From Selaginella moellendorffii (Eukaryota > Plantae > Lycopodiophyta), in contig NW_003314317.1 in assembly GCF_000143415.4 (NCBI RefSeq), forward strand, positions 310,001 to 374,000: a stretch of 64,000 nt of DNA. The letters run 5' to 3'. Shown piece after piece: positions 11,631-55,011 of this stretch. Numbering within the stretch: position 1 is the stretch's first letter; each line of letters opens with the position of its first letter. The notes beneath the pieces are model-generated. The model saw only the letters and a program-made list of their open reading frames with translations, was not told where the DNA came from and searched no databases. The position numbers and the translations under genes were made by a program.

Positions 11631-14029
11631 GTGATCACCAGCGGTGACCCAGCATCAAGTGTTCCCGAGTATGATGCACCTGTACTCGAAGAGGATGACG
11701 AGCATGACTTGCAAGGAACTCCAGATGTAGCTAATCTTCTCTTGCAGCCGGTTGCTCCAATCGAGCTGGAGGATTCGTCCTCGCCAGCACCACCCTTGCA
11801 GCTCGAGGCAGTTCTCGCTAGCAGTCACGCGGCAGCGTCAAGTGTTCCCGAGTATGATCTACCACCATTACCTGTACAAACCCATGATTTGCAAGAGGTA
11901 ACTCAGAGAGCTTAGATGGTTTGCCTGGAACCGCACCAACCTTCTCTTGCAGCTAGAGGCGGTCATGGTTGGCACTGTGGATTCAGTTCGGTATACTTCT
12001 CTTTGTGGCAAGACACTTGCAATCGACGACGACAACGACGACAACGACGACAACCTGAGCTGGGAGGATATCCAGAGCTTCTCTCGGACCTGGACATTCC
12101 CGTCGGTGCAGCCACCGTCCAGAGCCGAATTGCATCTGGAGGTGGAGGAACTTAAGAAGCTAGTTGGAGAGTGGACTTGGAAGCTACCGACCACTCTTCA
12201 GTCGATAAAAGAAGAAATGTGGAGTAGGCTTTTGAACGCGGGCTTGGAGGACGTCCCAGGAATTATGGGAAGAACTCAAAAACTTCCTGGGGTGGCATCG
12301 ATTCCCAGTTATCAGTTCCCGACGGATGCTTCTGGAGGCAGCGCCAGGTCCTCCTATCTTCGTCTCCAACGAGAATGGATCTTCTCTGTTCCGCTGGGTG
12401 GATCGCTGCATAGCTCCACTGTGCGCACAACAAGATGGAGAAGAACAAGCTTCAGTCTTTTGGCAGAGGTTGAGAGGCGATGGCACCAGCAGCGTGAGAA
12501 AGCACAGGAGGCCTCCAGACAAGAATAGTGAAGGACAAGAACCTTCTGGCAGCAATGGCCGAGGAGTCATCCTACAAGGTATGTCTCTGTTGACAGGAAT
12601 TAGATATGTATTCGTACTAAGATCTACACTGAACAGGTGCTAAAGCGTCATGCAGCAGCAGGATCTCGAAAGTTGTTGAGGCAAGCTGATGTTTCATCGA
12701 CACCAGCTTCAGTCTTTTGGCGGAGCTTGCAAGGTGATGGTGTGGGAATGCACAGGAGGCTTCCATACAAGAATAGTGAAGAACTTGCAGCAGCAATGGC
12801 CGACAAGTCATCCTACAAGGTATGCCTCTGCTGACAGGAAGCAGATATATTCGTACTATATGCTGGATGGACATTGAACAGGTGCTAAAGTCCCATGCAG
12901 CCACAGGATTTCCATCTCAGAAGTTACTGGCTGGCGGCACTGGTGACACTAAGGAGGCTAGCAGCAATGCTTCACCACCACCAGCATCGCCACCACCTTT
13001 TATGTGGTGGTGGTTCCCTCGAAGCTTGGGCGAGGATGGTGGGAAGGCCAAGAGGATCAACACCGAAACGTTTCAAGAAGCTGAAGAGACTTCATTATCG
13101 ATCTCTCAGAGTTTAGTGTATGACGTCGGGGTGAGCAGCGGCAGTGCCAGTGATTTCATTGAGTTATTTGAAGGAGAAGGCATTAGCAGCAGTGATGCCT
13201 TCCTGAACTCGCTGTTGGAAGGCGAAGGTGGCAGCAGCAGCAGCAATGCGTATCTTCAGCTGGCTTCCTCCAATGGTCTCAACTTGCAAGCGACGGCTGT
13301 GGCGGCAACTCCGCTGCTTCTTCCAATCCTTGCCGGGCTGCTGGTTGCGCTGCTCCTCCTCTTCTTTCTCTACTTCCTCTTGGGGTGGGGGAGGAGGAAG
13401 AGAGGGCTCCTGCCTCACTGAGTTCCAGCTTTCGATGCAAATGCATCAGGATGTGCAGTGGACGGGATCAAGTTGTCGCAGGCATGGCTAGGTACTTGGA
13501 TCAAAACTTGAAGCCGGTGGCTTAACACTCCGTGACCCCCATCGGGAGTGATAAAACTTTGGTGGCAGGTTTTCATCGGCTGGAGAGAAGGTGGCTCTAG
13601 CGTCATCAAGGCAAGAAGTGAGCGGAGATATCTTACAAAACAGAGGTTGCTGGTGGTTCTGGAGCTTTGTCTGGTCATACACAACTTTCTATACCAATTG
13701 ATGGTGTAAGTGCAAGCTAGGAAGAAAGATCATATACTGAGTGTTTGTAGAATTTAAACATTGCTGATTCAGAAAAACAGTTTTTTGTTTTCTTCGAGGC
13801 TTGGTGGGAAGCAAAAAAAGTTGCATGACTAGAAGTAACACTTGGATGGCAAGATGAGTTACTACCCTATGTGAGAGGTAAATGGAAGAAAGCACAGTTA
13901 CATTGCTTGTGAAAGGATTCGTGCAAAGCCTTCTCTTGTGCGTCTCTTCCTGTCTCCAGTCTTTGCTCACTTGGTTATGGCCTGAAAGATGAACGAAAAA
14001 AAGAATAGCTCTTAACCAGTGAGCGAGAT

Positions 14030-17000
14030 TTCATAGATGGTAGTGCAAGTGTTAACATTATTAAATGCTCAGTATACAAAATGATGGGACTTGGACCAAT
14101 TTAATTAGTATCCTTTAAAGTCAAAATGACTAATGACAAAAGTGTGTAACCATTTGGAACCATCCACAACATCCTAATCAAGATCAACAATCAAAAGTTC
14201 AAAGTGACTTTCATCATATTCAAGATGGATAAAGAATATCGTTCTTATGAAGTATTTCTTGGATGAACTTAGCTCAAGATAGTTAATGTTGTCATATACT
14301 GGCAGAAGAGCATAATTGCCTTTGGAAAGCATCAAAAACCCCCTTGAATCTCCATAAGTACAACAAAGAAAATTCCAAAGAAATTCTGACCAAATATTAT
14401 TCAACACTACAATTGGAATGAATGCCTTAACAACTATGAAGAAGTATAAATTATAAAGGCAGACCTAGAATTAAAGTCCCTTGTCGAAGTTGATCTCAAT
14501 TGAGTTATTCCAAAGCCTAATTCAATTTGCTCAACGAAACTTGAAACTCAAGAAACTCAACTTAAGGAAAACTCCTAACTTAAGAAAATTCAACACTTAA
14601 GATTACATCAACAGAGATCAAGAAATAGTATGACCAACTAGGAATTAAACCTGAGCATCTCTAACTAATTTAGCAATAAATCAACCTCAAGGAAGAACTA
14701 CAAAAAGGCTCTTAACTCAAACTAATTCTCAATCTTGAAGAACCAACTAAAGAAATCAGCTCAAGAACCAAAGATGAACCATGGAAGTTTCATATCACTA
14801 GAGATCTAGATCACATCTTTAGAGATAGAGCAATTGACATTTTAAAGAAGTATAAAGATATTTTTGCTTGGTCTTACATAAATTTGAGAAGAATCTCTCC
14901 CGAGATCTGTATACATCAAATTGAACTTCTTCTTCAGACTGTACTACGGAAACAATCAACATACCAAATGAACCTCAACATGCAATTGAAAGTCAAAGAA
15001 ACACTTGATAAACTCAAGCAAGTCGGTTTCATTTACCCAATCCAAAATCTAGAATAGTTATTACCACTAGTCATTGTTTTTAAGAAGAACAATAAACTCA
15101 TGATCCATCTTAACTACAAAAAGCTCAATAACACCATATGGAAAAACACATTCTCAATTCCCTTTTCTAATGAGATTTTTGACACAATTGTGAGATACAA
15201 AATATACTCATTCCTTGACAGTTTCTAAGGATACAATTAAGTTTATATTGCACCTAAAGATTTGTACAAGATAGCTTTCATTAGTCTATAAGGCACTTAT
15301 ATGTATATCTATATATGCCATTTGATTTTTTTAACACACCATTTACTTTCCAAAGAATTATCATTGACACTTTTAGAGAATACCTTACCAGATTCATGTG
15401 AGTTTGCATAGATAACTTCAGTGCTTTCAACAGCAAAGAACACCATCTTTACTATCTTGAGAAAGGCTTTATCAGATATCATTGCCTTGAATCTTGAGAA
15501 ATGCAATTTCTTCCCTGAAGTCTGGAGTTCTACTTCGATGTGTCATTTGCAAAGAAAGCATCCTCATTAACAAAGACAAGACTTTCATTATCACCAATAT
15601 GCAACATCCAACAAATATCGCCAAACTTTGAACTTTCCTTGGCAAAATAAGATACCATCGACAATTCATCAAAATTATACAAAGATCACTAAACCACTCA
15701 CCCAGCTCTTCAAGAAGAATCAAGTCTATAAATGGACTCAAAAATGTTAAAAACCTTTCAACACAATTAAGAATTCATTAACAAAAACTTTAATATTTGT
15801 TTAACAAAATTGGAGCAAAGATTTCAACATTCAAGTCGACACCTCCAACTATGCAATTAGAGTGATTCTTTCACGATAATAAAAAAATTACAAAATTAAC
15901 CAATCTACTACACAAGTCAAAGACTCAATTCAACTTAGATGAACTACACCACCACAGAAAAAGAAGTTCTTGGAATGGTTTACACACTCTAGAAATTTTG
16001 ACATTACCTTCTCGGCAACAAAGTAAAAATCATGATCGACTATAAAACACTTCTATACCTTTTTAACAAAACCATCCTCAACACCAAAATTGCCTAATAG
16101 TTCTTACTCCTTCAAGAATATAACTTCAAGATCATTTATAAGCCCAACAAATAACACAAACAAGCTGACCACTTTAGCCATATTATGATAGGTGAACAAC
16201 CAAAGTATAACGAGGATAACTTCCCCAACTCCAACATCTTGTAAATCCATACTTCATCAACCTAGATACAAGACATCTACCACTACCTAACAACAATGAA
16301 AATACCAAACTAATACATTACTTCTGACCAACACAAGCAATTCATTTTAAAGATAAGACCATATTCAGTCATGAGAGGAAGACTATACAAGAAAAGATGA
16401 GACAATGTATTATGAAGATGTGTACAACCTAAAGAAACTCAAGATTTACTTGAAGAAGCTCATTGTAGATAAGCAAGAAGACACTTTGCAAAAGAAATCA
16501 CAACTCAAAAAATTTTCCAAGCTAAACTTTAGCGGCCAACACTCTAAAATGATTCAGCAAAATTTTGTTATGAATATAACATTTATTCAAGAACCAAGCA
16601 TGTGCCAAAAATGTAGAATCAAGGACTTCATCCAACAACTTCTCTCAAACCACTTTAGCAATTTTGTAGAACCACTTACAACAAGTTCAAAATGAAACAA
16701 ATATATCCTCATAACTACTAATTACATAACAAAGTGGGTTGAAGCTCAATTAATAAATGCTGCAATAGGGAAAAACACAGTAAAGGTCATCTATAAAAAC
16801 ATCATCACAAGGAACAGTTTACCTCAAGAATTTGTTATAAATCGAGAAACACACTTCATTAACAAGACCACCAATATTTTAACTCAAGAATTCACAATCA
16901 AGCATAAGGCTTTAACACTATACTATCCTCAAGGAAATGGTCAAACCTACAAACAAGACCCTACAAAATATATTCAAAAGGGATCATGAAGATAAATAAA

Positions 17001-17400
17001 AAAGACTGGGACAATCGTATCCACAATGCCCTTATCAAACTATTTATAAGCTTTTAACAAATTTGACATCATTTAAGCTTGCTTACAGCTTGACACCACT
17101 TAAGTACATCATTCTTTCATTGCGAATGGCAATACTCTATGTGATCAACCAAGAAGAATCAGTGACCAATGATAGAAAAGCTTAACAAAAAACAACTATA
17201 AGCAATTTGGACACTTAAAACCATTCAAGCTAAAAGAAAAGCTAACCATGACAAAAAAAGACAACTCAAGAAAAGTGAAGAATTCAAGGTTAGAGATCAA
17301 GTTTTATAATTTCAAGGAAATATAGAGAAAATCAACTCAAAGATACAATCAAGATGGGAAGGACAACATTTAAACCCTATGGATTTTTTCTAAAATTGTT
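14030..17400 (+). mobile_element. Highly decayed Ty3/gypsy (non-chromovirus type) pol remnant; LTRs not identified, boundaries approximate
   Basis: Stop-riddled motifs in gypsy order: FAWSY..ISPEICIHQI (~14865), YSFLDSF*GYN*VYIAPKD (~15205), VDTSNYAI (~15835), NYTTTEKEVLGMV (~15942), YITKWVEA (~16725), YYPQGNGQ (~16921). Confidence 0.85.
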
Positions 17401-18859
17401 TTCTTTAATTACTTATAACTTCCCACTGGTGAAGAGTGATTGACATTAATTCCATGCATGAAGGAAATCCACTAAAGTGTATCAAGGTACTTGAGAACTA
17501 CAATAGTGGATTTTTTTTTACAAATGAGCAATGTGATTGACGAAGCTAAGCTGCAATTCAAGTTTTTGATCTCCACACTAGAGATGTGTAAGTCCACAAC
17601 TTTTGCCAGTAAAGCAATTATGATTCTCTATGATGACTTGTAATACAAGACACATTGCAAACTACCTCTATGACAAGCTTATCAAGGAACTTCATATCAC
17701 AATGACAATGATCCAAGATAGCCTCAAATGCAAAACCTCATCCCTACATTGCAGCACTCATTCTAAAGCTCAACACCACCATTTTACTACAAATCAAAGA
17801 GACAACAACAAATAATAGCAATAAAAGATTGAGGAAAGCCACAAACATAGAGACATTATAAACACGAAGAAAAGGGGAATGTGCTTAAAAAATATGAGAC
17901 AATTTCCCATTAACAGTAAATTATCATTAGGATCCGTCCCCACAAAATAAAGAAAATCATCCTTAAAGCAATATTGAAAATGTAAATACTTATATAACAA
18001 GTCATCAATAAATAATGCAAAATTCTCAAACTTATTATAAAGCCTTTAGCCTCACTAGGACTCAATAAATTTGTCACATTAGGCTTGGCTTTGGGGTGAC
18101 CTTTGAAGTGTTGAGGTAAGTCATATATAACATGTTTATAGTGTGAGTATACACTTTCATATAACCTAGTAGAAAGCATCACATGATTGGGGAGAAATCT
18201 AGATAACTACACTCCCTTCCAACTTCTTTATGCATTAATGCTGTGCATCCAATTTAGCTCAGGCAACTAGCATTGAAGGCCTAAATTCCACTTTGCAGCT
18301 CCAACCAGCTCTTGGAGCTCAAGGAGACTAGAGAGCATGCAGCCCTGCACAATTGACTATACCAGCAATAACTCATTTGTCAGCAAAGGAAGACACATGG
18401 GTCAACTTTTCAGACAGGGATCTCATCTGGCTTTAAAATATCTGAACCCATCAACCAAAGCTAGAACCAGCTTGGAGCGGCCCATTTCAGGTGAAAAGCA
18501 TCACTGGTGCAAAGTTTATTTTACGTTCAAGTGATAGATGAATCCCTTCAACAGGGTTCATCTTCAATGCTATTACATATAACAGCAGCAACATACACAT
18601 AGAGGTTATCTAGTTCTTCATTTTTGCTTCACCACGCAGCCCCATCATGAAAAGTCTCAAAAAAAGCTCATGCATCTATGAGTTTTATTCATATCAAAAC
18701 ACTTCTAACAAGTCCCCTCTTCTTCCTAATGGGTGGAGTAGCGTATTGCTCTAACGTGCCTTTTTTCACAACATTCAGAGTGCGGATATATGGGGATATT
18801 CCCTCGAGATGCATATGTGGATGAGCTCCGGATACTTCTCTTCTATGTCCAGCTTGGCC

Positions 18860-52566: not shown

Positions 52567-52884
52567 TTAAGAGCTTGTTGGAGGAGGAGCAAGAGGAGCA
52601 TGGCAATCCCAGTAAAAACATTGAGTCTTTCCATCATGACCGCTAAAGCATCTTCGCCATGCTTCAACAGGATCTAAAAAACAAAAGACCGAAAAGTTAT
52701 TTGTGGGGAAAATTGCTCTGAAGAGAAAATTATAAGAAACAATCTTACTTCCATCAGGATCTGTCAAAGTAACATGTTCAGGAGCACCAGGAGCTGGAGT
52801 CGGAGGAGAATTCTTCCCAAGAACACATCCGGCCAAAACAAAAGCGAAGAAGCAAATAAAGAAGATAGATTTTGCTGAAGCCAT
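52567..52884 (-). CDS. Small secreted Pro-rich/Cys-containing peptide (~80 aa, one intron)
   Basis: Signal-peptide-like MASAKSIFFICFFAFVLAGCVLG; frame-preserving GTAAG...TTTTTAG intron; TATA-like TATAAATA upstream. Confidence 0.65.
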   Translation of the reverse strand: MASAKSIFFICFFAFVLAGCVLGKNSPPTPAPGAPEHVTLTDPDGSKIVSYNFLFRAIFPTNNFSVFCFLDPVEAWRRCFSGHDGKTQCFYWDCHAPLAPPPTSS

Positions 52885-53049
52885 GTTGAACCAGCTGACT
52901 TTTTGTGAATAAATTTCAAGCTTCAAACCCCACATATTTATAGTAATACTTTGGTGGCAAAAATAAAACACTCTAGGATAACGTTTATTTTTGAAATATG
53001 TATGCGACCATGCTTAACGAAAACAATGGTACAAACATTCTAGTTGTCT

Positions 53050-54508
53050 TTACAACTCGGTTTTGGGGATGGAAGGTCTCTTTGCAGTGGGGCGTGTGAT
53101 CTCCTTGGCGGTGTCTCTGTAGTACATGTTATACAACTCCCTCGAGTAGCGTACGAAGTTGTAGAGGAAATCTACACACGGCAAACTCTACTGTCACGCC
53201 AAAGTTTTTCAGAGAGACCATACCTGGATTTTGCTTCTGGAGGTAGTCGATCTGGATGGGCGAGAAAAGGCTCTGGAGCTGCTCGAAAGGCTCAAACCGC
53301 GGCCTCTGCAAGGATTTCTCGGGCTCTCGGTCCTGCTGCTCGACGTGATCCCGGAGCTCTCGATCATCGCTGGGAGCCTCGACTCGATCGGGCAATGCAG
53401 TCTTCGCTTGGCAGGAGCCCGTTGTTTTGCTGCATTTCTTTATCCATTCGGACGTATTCGTCAAATCTGCGTCCACGAAGATTGTCTTAGACGATCACAA
53501 AAGTCTGTTCTACTGCCTCATACCTGCGAAAGGCGTCCTAGTTCTCTTCTGTTTCTCTCGCGCTTGCAAGCCACCTGATGGAATAACTTACGTAAGTTCG
53601 ATATGAAAACCATCAAGCGAGCTATACCTTTGATGTCACACTTGATCTTGAGAGACGCAGCACCGAGAGGAGTGTCGTTGTTACAGAAAACTCTGATCGG
53701 GCTGGACACTGTGCTCCCGAGAAGTAGGCGCTGGTCGTCATAGGCAGCGAGCAAGAATCGAAAAGTAGAAGCTTCTCCTTTCACCGGGCAGACATGCGTG
53801 CTGGCTTCGTCGATCGCCACGTACAAGTTCCTTGGAGATTTTTGCGTGCCAAAGCGCTGGAGTCCGCGAAGAACCGGACCTTTGCAAGGATTTTTGGAGT
53901 TCTTGCACTTGGAGCGCGTCACTGGGATCCATTTGTAGCTCTGCTGCTGCGTAGATTTTTCCTGGTAATCCTCGATCGGCGACGAGTAGACGAGCAGAAT
54001 GAAGAGATCTATCCTGTTCCCTTGGGTGAAACGGACCTGGAATTTCAAGCAGCTCTCTCGAAGCCGATCGTCGACGTCAGCCGGTCCGACTGGGATCTGG
54101 ACAGTCTCGGAGATTTTCAGCTTCGCGCTCGAGGAAAGCGCGTCTCGTATGATCAGCTTCACGCGATTGTAAGAGCACTTGTGCTTGCCCAGCTTGTAGG
54201 CCCTGGATGAATCAAAGAAGCGAGGGAGAGAGAAATCGGTGAGAATTCGTCGAAATGTGGCAAGATTCGCGCAAGAACCGCGAGGCAATAGCTCAAGAAA
54301 GACGAAATCTCAGCGCCAGGCGCCAAAGACCATACCTTGCTTCCGGCTGCTCCTTGATCGCACGGGGCAAACCGGTCGCCACGCAGCAGCACACTTCCGC
54401 CTCATCGTCCAGAATCCGCGACTCGCATTGGACGAGGGGATCGATTATCGGCGAATTACCGCCATCGCCAGCGCCAAGCTCCCCATCGCCATCGCCAAGC
54501 TCCTCCAT
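53050..54508 (-). CDS. Five-exon protein, candidate Ig-fold (p53/STAT/NDT80/SPT23-type) DNA-binding factor
   Basis: Exons ~54508-54336, 54202-53628, 53575-53524, 53466-53224, 53171-53050 splice in frame with GT-AG; beta-rich core ending SSPIRVFCNND; basic patch KQKRTR. Function is inferred. Confidence 0.7.
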
Positions 54509-54687
54509 ACTAGTAGCCTACATTCTACCCCCATTCAAACCACAGAAGAAACCCTCCGCCCAATGAAACGCTGCCAGCTGCGCAAACCCCCAAAGATCGA
54601 GCATTCTTTGATTTACTGTACGACCAAGGGCCACAGTTAACTTCCGTACACTCTAGGGCTAGGGTTTGTCGATGATAGATCGTCGCG

Positions 54688-55011
54688 ATGGCCGAGAGCG
54701 TAGAGCCGCGGAGGACGATCGGCGCCAGGGTTTTCCTCAAACTCAACCGCAATGGCCACATCCTGGGCGCGATTTCGGCGGCGCTGGCAGGAATCATGCT
54801 GGTGGTGAAGATGAAGAAGGCGGAGGAGCTCCTCAATGAGCACAGGACGGGGCTTTGCGGCCTGTCCGATGGAATGGCGGAGGAGAACCGGCGACTGAAG
54901 CAGGGATTGATGAGCCTCCGGCAGCGTGTGCTGGATGAGGTGAGCCGGGATGGCAAGAAGCTGCCGCCATTGCCCACCAGGCTCAAGCAGATTTTTGATT
55001 CGGTGCAATGA
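54688..55011 (+). CDS. 107-aa single-TM plus coiled-coil orphan protein, paralog of 52163-52486
   Basis: GC3-rich ORF, hydrophobic ILGAISAALAGIMLVV, paralog similarity. Confidence 0.8.
   Translation: MAESVEPRRTIGARVFLKLNRNGHILGAISAALAGIMLVVKMKKAEELLNEHRTGLCGLSDGMAEENRRLKQGLMSLRQRVLDEVSRDGKKLPPLPTRLKQIFDSVQ

Follow-up and report, generated by a model that had tools for sequence, protein, structure and literature searches.

The gene SELMODRAFT_439296 lies at 54508..53050 on the minus strand of the window, the whole 64,000-nucleotide stretch of Selaginella moellendorffii DNA that was analysed. Reading of the sequence gave five exons and four introns, each GT..AG. The ATG start codon (54508-54506) is closely preceded by an in-frame stop (54520-54518), and the TAA stop is at 53052-53050. 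A protein search identified the gene as S. moellendorffii SELMODRAFT_439296, whose database protein (P0001, 384 aa, annotated "hypothetical protein") is 99% identical over exon 2 and has the same exon structure. The parts of the gene are the following:

54336..54508, minus strand: exon 1, an acidic Gly/Asp-rich N-terminus, then the domain lead-in (CxxxxT...EQPE-R)
54203..54335, minus strand: intron 1, 133 nt, GT..AG, skipped in all 4 RNA runs
53628..54202, minus strand: exon 2, the entire conserved ~190-aa domain, a predicted beta-sandwich; in-frame part 53629-54201
53575..53627, minus strand: intron 2, 53 nt, GT..AG, skipped in the RNA contigs
53524..53574, minus strand: exon 3, 51 nt, encoding GG(L/W) and then the basic patch REKQKRTRT
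53467..53523, minus strand: intron 3, 57 nt, GT..AG, skipped in the RNA contigs
53224..53466, minus strand: exon 4, a charged linker of variable sequence followed by the first half of a vascular-plant C-terminal motif (F-E/D-P...LQ..FSP.QI..LQ..NP)
53172..53223, minus strand: intron 4, 52 nt, GT..AG, skipped in the RNA contigs
53050..53171, minus strand: exon 5, which completes the C-terminal motif with its second half (F...FVRY.R.LY) and adds a short tail before the TAA at 53052-53050

Logan contigs from four runs in four studies skip exactly these four introns, which appear as CT..AC on the plus strand, and a single 1181-nt contig covers all five exons. Because contigs from four studies skip exactly its introns, the gene model is confirmed as transcribed and spliced as proposed, and the cleanly splicing five-exon gene of the first-pass annotation is borne out. 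An Arg codon is split between the final 2 nt of exon 1 and exon 2, at a joint that the contigs place at 54202|54336. If intron 2 were retained, the frame would read through to a stop at 53520-53518, giving a 256-aa ORF at 53518-54288. The RNA contigs extend from 54527 to 53041 and stop just beyond the stop codon. Their end at 54527 suggests that the transcript begins about 19 nt upstream of the ATG. One RNA contig runs directly into Illumina adapter at 54527.

P0001 represents an allelic form: six substitutions separate it from the window, together with a 9-nt indel at 53331. This in-frame indel in exon 4, which removes E-Q-Q, is present in three of the four RNA runs. In both alleles the reading frame is unbroken over the five exons. 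The transcribed variants in exon 2 comprise five synonymous and one nonsynonymous, compared with nine and four for all exons together. These small numbers point to constraint on the exon 2 domain and looser constraint elsewhere. The conserved GGW after the domain is GGL in the window and GGW in the database allele, and a 10-nt allelic indel in the 3' UTR (53031-53040) is visible in the RNA contigs.

Neighbouring genes lie close on both sides. Head to head with SELMODRAFT_439296, in the interval 54509-55011, a plus-strand gene from 54688 carries a 107-aa ORF. It begins ~180 bp from the SELMODRAFT_439296 start codon, so that the two share a short divergent promoter. The ORF codes for a single hydrophobic segment and a tail of coiled-coil-like character, and has no significant Pfam match (SLATT_fungal, E 0.047). 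Directly downstream, a small minus-strand gene at 52567-52884 has a clear signal-peptide-like start (MASAKSIFFICFFAFVLAGC...) and a Pro-rich stretch, and no Pfam match. Its position leaves no space for more 3' exons of SELMODRAFT_439296. Further away, a 4-kb block at 14001-18000 has a G+C of 0.32, whereas the window is otherwise at about 0.50, and its AT skew is strongly positive; possible origins are a transposon, an organelle-derived insert and a repeat.

The core motifs that the first-pass annotation had quoted, RAYKLGKHKCSYNR, KCKNSKNPC, STHVCP and FRFLLAAYD...SSPIRVFCNND, are all found in the exon 2 translation. We number residues by exon 2 (191 aa) and scored conservation over 123 non-identical family domains. 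Conserved in at least 95% of these are W91, R96, C99, C106, R116, K121, D131, E132, H136, R148, N174, N175, D176, P178 and G180. Many of these residues fall in the following segments:

53884..53907, minus strand: Cys99...Cys106 loop (KCKNSKNPCK), with the C99 codon at 53907-53905 (conserved in 99%) and the C106 codon at 53886-53884 (98% of 123 domains)
53794..53811, minus strand: D131-E132-A-S-T-H136 predicted helix (IDEASTH), with D131, E132 and H136 each conserved in 98% of 123 domains and the H136 codon at 53796-53794
53662..53706, minus strand: S166-x-P-I-R170-V-x-x-N174-N175-D176-x-P178-x-G180 predicted strand and loop, with N174, N175 and D176 at 98% and P178 and G180 at 97%

The window protein keeps every family-invariant residue as well as the RAYKLGK lead-in, and P0001 matches the family profile with 323 bits (E 9e-92). 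Outside exon 2, the exon 1 lead-in (CxxxxT...EQPE-R) aligns with bryophyte homologs and exon 3 aligns with a conserved GGW...EK...R-P-L-Q linker in relatives. Exon 3 also supplies the basic, NLS-like patch that had been noted after the core, REKQKRTRT. The domain itself is basic (Selaginella pI 9.6, net charge +14; family median pI 8.8; 14 conserved K/R columns), and many of its invariant Arg, Lys and Asn residues lie in or beside loops. Most relatives share a conserved basic loop (R/K-x-G/P-K/R-R plus about 12 further residues), which is missing from the Selaginella copy. Between its two cysteines, this copy has three inserted residues, giving C-x6-C where most relatives have C-x3-C; the His lies 30 residues downstream.

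These positions suggest where the domain might hold a metal. The Cys99/Cys106 loop, which comes after the invariant W91 and R96 and a one-turn helix (96-98 in the predicted model), is a candidate metal-binding or DNA-contact loop. The predicted model puts the D131-H136 segment in a helix (132-137), and D131, E132 and H136 are candidate third and fourth ligands. C99, C106 and H136 each occur in at least 98% of the 123 domains; zinc binding by the exon 2 domain is therefore plausible, and the residue pattern makes a Cys2-His plus Asp/Glu site conceivable. The best-conserved part of the family is the S166...G180 stretch, around which the model has a strand (160-165), a short strand (~169-170), a loop (171-181) that precedes the last strand, and that strand (182-190).

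A word-index search returned ten relatives in liverworts and mosses, 42-55% identical over the whole of exon 2. A profile search of 1.84 billion representatives returned 252 matches at E<=1e-3, 47 of them at E<=1e-30. The family therefore counts at least 252 cluster representatives, most of the weak matches carrying no name. Named members from vascular plants are the lycophyte Diphasiastrum, the fern Adiantum and the conifer Cryptomeria. Bryophytes contribute the mosses Physcomitrium and Sphagnum and the liverworts Calypogeia and Riccia, and streptophyte algae contribute Chara, Closterium and Mesotaenium. Chlorophyte members come from Chlorella, Micractinium, Myrmecia, Apatococcus, Botryococcus, Trebouxia, Picochlorum, Ostreococcus and Chloropicon. 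All named members are annotated as hypothetical or merely as "E2F/DP domain-containing". The first-pass annotation had supposed a rare family, which does not hold for one that reaches from prasinophytes to a conifer. Its suggestion that the family might be missing from angiosperms fared better: no angiosperm member was found in two named searches (one of them word-dependent) or among the named profile-search matches. Since no angiosperm matched despite the very many angiosperm proteomes in the databases, absence from flowering plants is supported. SELMODRAFT_439296 is the Selaginella member of an uncurated green-lineage gene family, whose hallmark is an N-terminal basic beta-sandwich of ~200 aa.

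Curated resources did not recognise this family. Pfam gave no significant match for exon 2, the other exons, P0001 or 41 aligned family members. The COE1_DBD, P53, RHD, CP2, STAT_bind, NDT80_PhoG and TIG models matched none of the 41 members, even at E<=10. Neither TIG nor HLH had a Pfam match in P0001 or 24 relatives, and neither TIG nor Ank, the SPT23/MGA2-type domains, had one in the window protein or P0001. By sequence, no solved structure in the PDB was found with exon 2 or with the 41-member family profile, and no EBF chain was among the results. Adenyl_transf, DUF7815, DUF5038 and sorting nexin came up in the Pfam and PDB searches with the exons, P0001 or the profile, as chance-level matches only. 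A Med14 RM5 match in Calypogeia P0003 scored 22.7 bits against a cut-off of 22; among the 41 members it came back in just 2, with E no better than 0.016, and we regard it as spurious. In the ESM Atlas, a feature search yielded nothing stronger than weak Ig/fn3-like leads (score <=0.86), and a shape search returned the family's own chlorophyte cluster. Our literature search found no paper on the gene or the domain and no mention of SELMODRAFT_439296.

The relatives carry further domains. An E2F_TDP winged helix (PF02319) follows the N-terminal domain in eight of the ten long relatives scanned and in Calypogeia P0003, with E-values down to 1e-35. A family-specific model detected a second, more diverged copy in six to seven of the long relatives, making a tandem pair. 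The sandwich is followed by such a pair in streptophyte algae, bryophytes, a clubmoss, a fern and a conifer. Because the domain is followed by tandem E2F/DP winged helices in its relatives, this is a transcription-factor family, and the transcription-factor setting proposed at the outset is backed by the fusion. Chlorophyte members have the N-terminal domain, but neither a winged helix nor another Pfam domain was detected in them. The most economical reading makes the N-terminal domain older than the E2F fusion; the alternative is that the winged helices were lost or diverged in chlorophytes.

The Selaginella protein contains no winged helix: P0001 has no PF02319 match, and the family-specific HMM found none at E<=1. 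Hidden winged-helix exons were not found near the gene within the window, where tblastn with six long relatives matched only exon 2 and exons 4-5. The latter match the extreme C-terminus of Cryptomeria P0013 (tblastn E 6e-6) and Adiantum P0012 (2e-6), and in the alignment also that of Diphasiastrum. The shared vascular-plant motif is roughly F-D-P-x2-L-Q-x2-F-S-P-x-Q-I-x2-L-Q-x2-N-P-x-F-x3-F-V-R-Y-x-R-x-L-Y. The tail had been described as low-complexity, but it is more than that: exons 4-5 share a conserved motif with Diphasiastrum, Adiantum and Cryptomeria. Considering that the winged helices are missing and that exons 4-5 match the C-terminus of the relatives, the Selaginella gene is the long form minus its middle, a naturally truncated family member.

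A maximum-likelihood tree placed the Selaginella copy in the land-plant clade (support 93/94), with its placement within the clade unresolved. Its branch (0.82) is the longest of any embryophyte in the tree; that of Diphasiastrum is 0.30. Riccia fluitans has a long form with winged helices and short forms without them (P0008 versus P0014), and the short forms group with the Riccia long form (89/79). Because of this grouping, the winged helices appear to have been lost independently in Riccia and Selaginella. An ancient subfamily without winged helices, common to Selaginella and Riccia, is not favoured, given where the Riccia short forms sit and the unresolved position of Selaginella.

We next consider the fold of the exon 2 domain. 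An AlphaFold2 model built from the 41-sequence alignment (pLDDT 87.7, pTM 0.85) has 11 strands of at least three residues, short bridges, two short helices and one helical turn. It shows the beta-sandwich of the EBF1 DNA-binding domain type, with four- plus five-stranded sheets, Rel-N-like. Foldseek ranked EBF1 first both for this model and for an independent model from 10 sequences, so that the proposed check by structure prediction and Foldseek returned a beta-sandwich. In a structural comparison giving the best 50 of 48,161 representative chains (lowest Z shown 3.6), EBF1 stood ~3 Z units above all non-DNA-binding matches and covered 132-141 of the 191 residues. The alignment pairs model residues 7-173 with EBF1 63-236 at 11-12% identity. 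The next matches are transcription-factor sandwiches as well, CP2c (Z 4.7-4.8), p53/CEP-1 (4.5-4.6) and Grhl (Grhl2; 4.4-4.5), all in the range of common arrangements. Further sandwiches, VosA (4.0-4.3), RelA (4.2), TonEBP (4.0) and p52 (3.7), are consistent with one another and in the same range. The exon 2 domain is thus predicted to have a fold of the p53/Rel-type transcription-factor sandwich class, closest to the EBF1/COE DNA-binding domain. The first-pass annotation had named a p53/STAT/NDT80/SPT23-like fold; the p53/Rel-type sandwich stands in a confident model, but its closest relative is EBF1/COE and not STAT, NDT80, CudA or SPT23.

Taken together, we think it rather probable that the SELMODRAFT_439296 protein is a nuclear regulator that touches DNA or chromatin. 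The loops of its EBF-like, p53/Rel-class sandwich, possibly stabilised by a metal, would make the contact. Candidates for it are the Cys99/Cys106 loop, which together with His136 and Asp131/Glu132 may hold the metal, and the N-N-D-x-P-x-G loop. The C-terminal motif would bring in partners. With its winged helices gone, the Selaginella protein would either regulate autonomously or compete at the family's targets. The missing basic loop and the long branch could reflect a relaxed or changed function in this copy.

A different role for the sandwich is unlikely in our estimate, yet it deserves the most weight among the competing explanations. The long relatives already hold two winged helices for DNA binding, and two E2F_TDP domains suffice for this in DEL/E2F7-type factors, so the sandwich could serve another purpose. 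It would then be a protein-protein, ligand-binding or dimerisation module, and the Selaginella protein a DNA-blind cofactor or decoy that titrates partners. The sandwich has no sequence match to any DNA-binding family, and the Selaginella copy has lost the conserved basic loop, as this explanation would have it. However, EBF1 exceeds every non-DNA-binding match by ~3 Z units over most of the domain, and the next coherent group of matches again consists of transcription-factor sandwiches. The domain is also basic, with invariant Arg, Lys and Asn at its loops, and in chlorophytes, where no winged helix is detectable, it is the sole conserved module. A DNA-contacting sandwich therefore remains our preferred reading. 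We are more doubtful of a bolder version of it, in which the domain and the DNA-binding domain of animal COE/EBF would be true homologues of very old descent. [quoted passage not shown] The Selaginella copy would show that the sandwich can bind DNA by itself.

It is also conceivable that the Selaginella gene is what remains of a long form in decay, still transcribed but functionless after internal deletion of its winged helices. The loss of the winged-helix block and of the basic loop would fit, as would the long terminal branch and the allelic differences outside exon 2, which are mostly nonsynonymous and include the in-frame indel. Yet the five-exon frame is intact in both alleles and correctly spliced in four independent studies, all family-invariant residues are retained, exon 2 variants are mainly synonymous (5 : 1), and the C-terminal motif is still recognisably conserved with fern and conifer. 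We consider decay very improbable. Least probable of all, and hardly credible to us, is a STAT/NDT80/CudA/SPT23-type domain closed by an S-x-P-I-x-V strand, as first proposed. Its S-x-P-I-R-V...N-N-D motif is real and is the best-conserved stretch of the family, and STAT and NDT80 share a broad fold class with p53 and Rel. However, STAT and NDT80 chains are not among the best 50 of the 48,161 representative chains, the lowest Z shown being 3.6, and STAT_bind, NDT80_PhoG and TIG match none of the 41 members at E<=10. Neither SH2, coiled-coil nor IPT was found in P0001 or the relatives scanned. As for CudA, we know of no solved structure. The plant CudA-like proteins of Arabidopsis and rice reportedly have an SH2 domain (Yamada et al. 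2008), whereas the family described here has none, and no Arabidopsis or rice member of it was found.

What is apparently new is an uncurated and widely conserved green-lineage domain of known fold class, fused with E2F winged helices in a combination so far undescribed. Plant transcription-factor catalogues rest on curated domain models, and since this domain has none, they either miss the family or list it only as "E2F/DP-containing" or "hypothetical". Should the sandwich bind DNA, a p53/Rel/EBF-class factor missing from flowering plants would exist in non-flowering plants and green algae, and fold-based work on the origin of COE-type domains could reach plants. The long relatives would in that case unite DNA-binding modules of two unrelated kinds in a single chain, a point relevant to the diversification of E2F/DEL-type cell-cycle regulators. 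The Selaginella copy and the independent Riccia pair without winged helices provide natural separation-of-function alleles.

The nearest known structure is the EBF1/COE DNA-binding domain (PDB 3MLN, 3MLO, 3MLP, 3LYR), but the green-lineage domain has no sequence similarity to it and no COE1_DBD match. In COE proteins the DNA-binding domain is followed by IPT/TIG and HLH, whereas the green-lineage family has neither and its relatives carry E2F winged helices instead. To our knowledge, COE proteins are known only from animals, while this family was found only in the green lineage. The COE zinc knuckle has the motif H-x3-C-x2-C-x5-C and lies at residues 157-170 of EBF1 (PMC4312928). This motif is absent from the green-lineage family, which has C-x3-6-C and a distant His. 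Judged from offsets between the aligned ranges, which is coarser than a residue-level alignment, the Cys99/Cys106 loop and its one-turn helix would fall roughly at the EBF1 zinc knuckle. The scores against the p53, CP2/Grainyhead, Rel/NFAT and velvet sandwiches are low, in a range that permits no claim beyond a common arrangement; these sandwiches are unrelated to the green-lineage domain in sequence and come with other accompanying domains.

On the E2F side, DEL genes are reported in Marchantia and other non-seed plants, with losses in several plant lineages, in a recent Marchantia cell-cycle study (PMC13237563). Its E2F, DP and DEL genes were identified there by means of the E2F Pfam model, and the sections consulted mention no N-terminal sandwich (PMC13237563). 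Chlamydomonas E2FR1 has one highly diverged E2F-like domain, no other recognised domain and no known function (PMC1599770). This makes E2FR1 a possible relative of the long form. Equating the family with E2FR1 is unsupported: no Chlamydomonas protein is among the named members, and no winged helix was detected in chlorophyte members. We know of no canonical DEL protein described with an N-terminal beta-sandwich, and the Selaginella protein, unlike DEL/E2F7-8, lacks any E2F_TDP domain. The long relatives, in contrast, resemble the atypical E2F factors (plant DEL/E2Fd-f and animal E2F7/8) in carrying two tandem E2F_TDP domains in one chain, the arrangement that defines DEL/E2F7-8.
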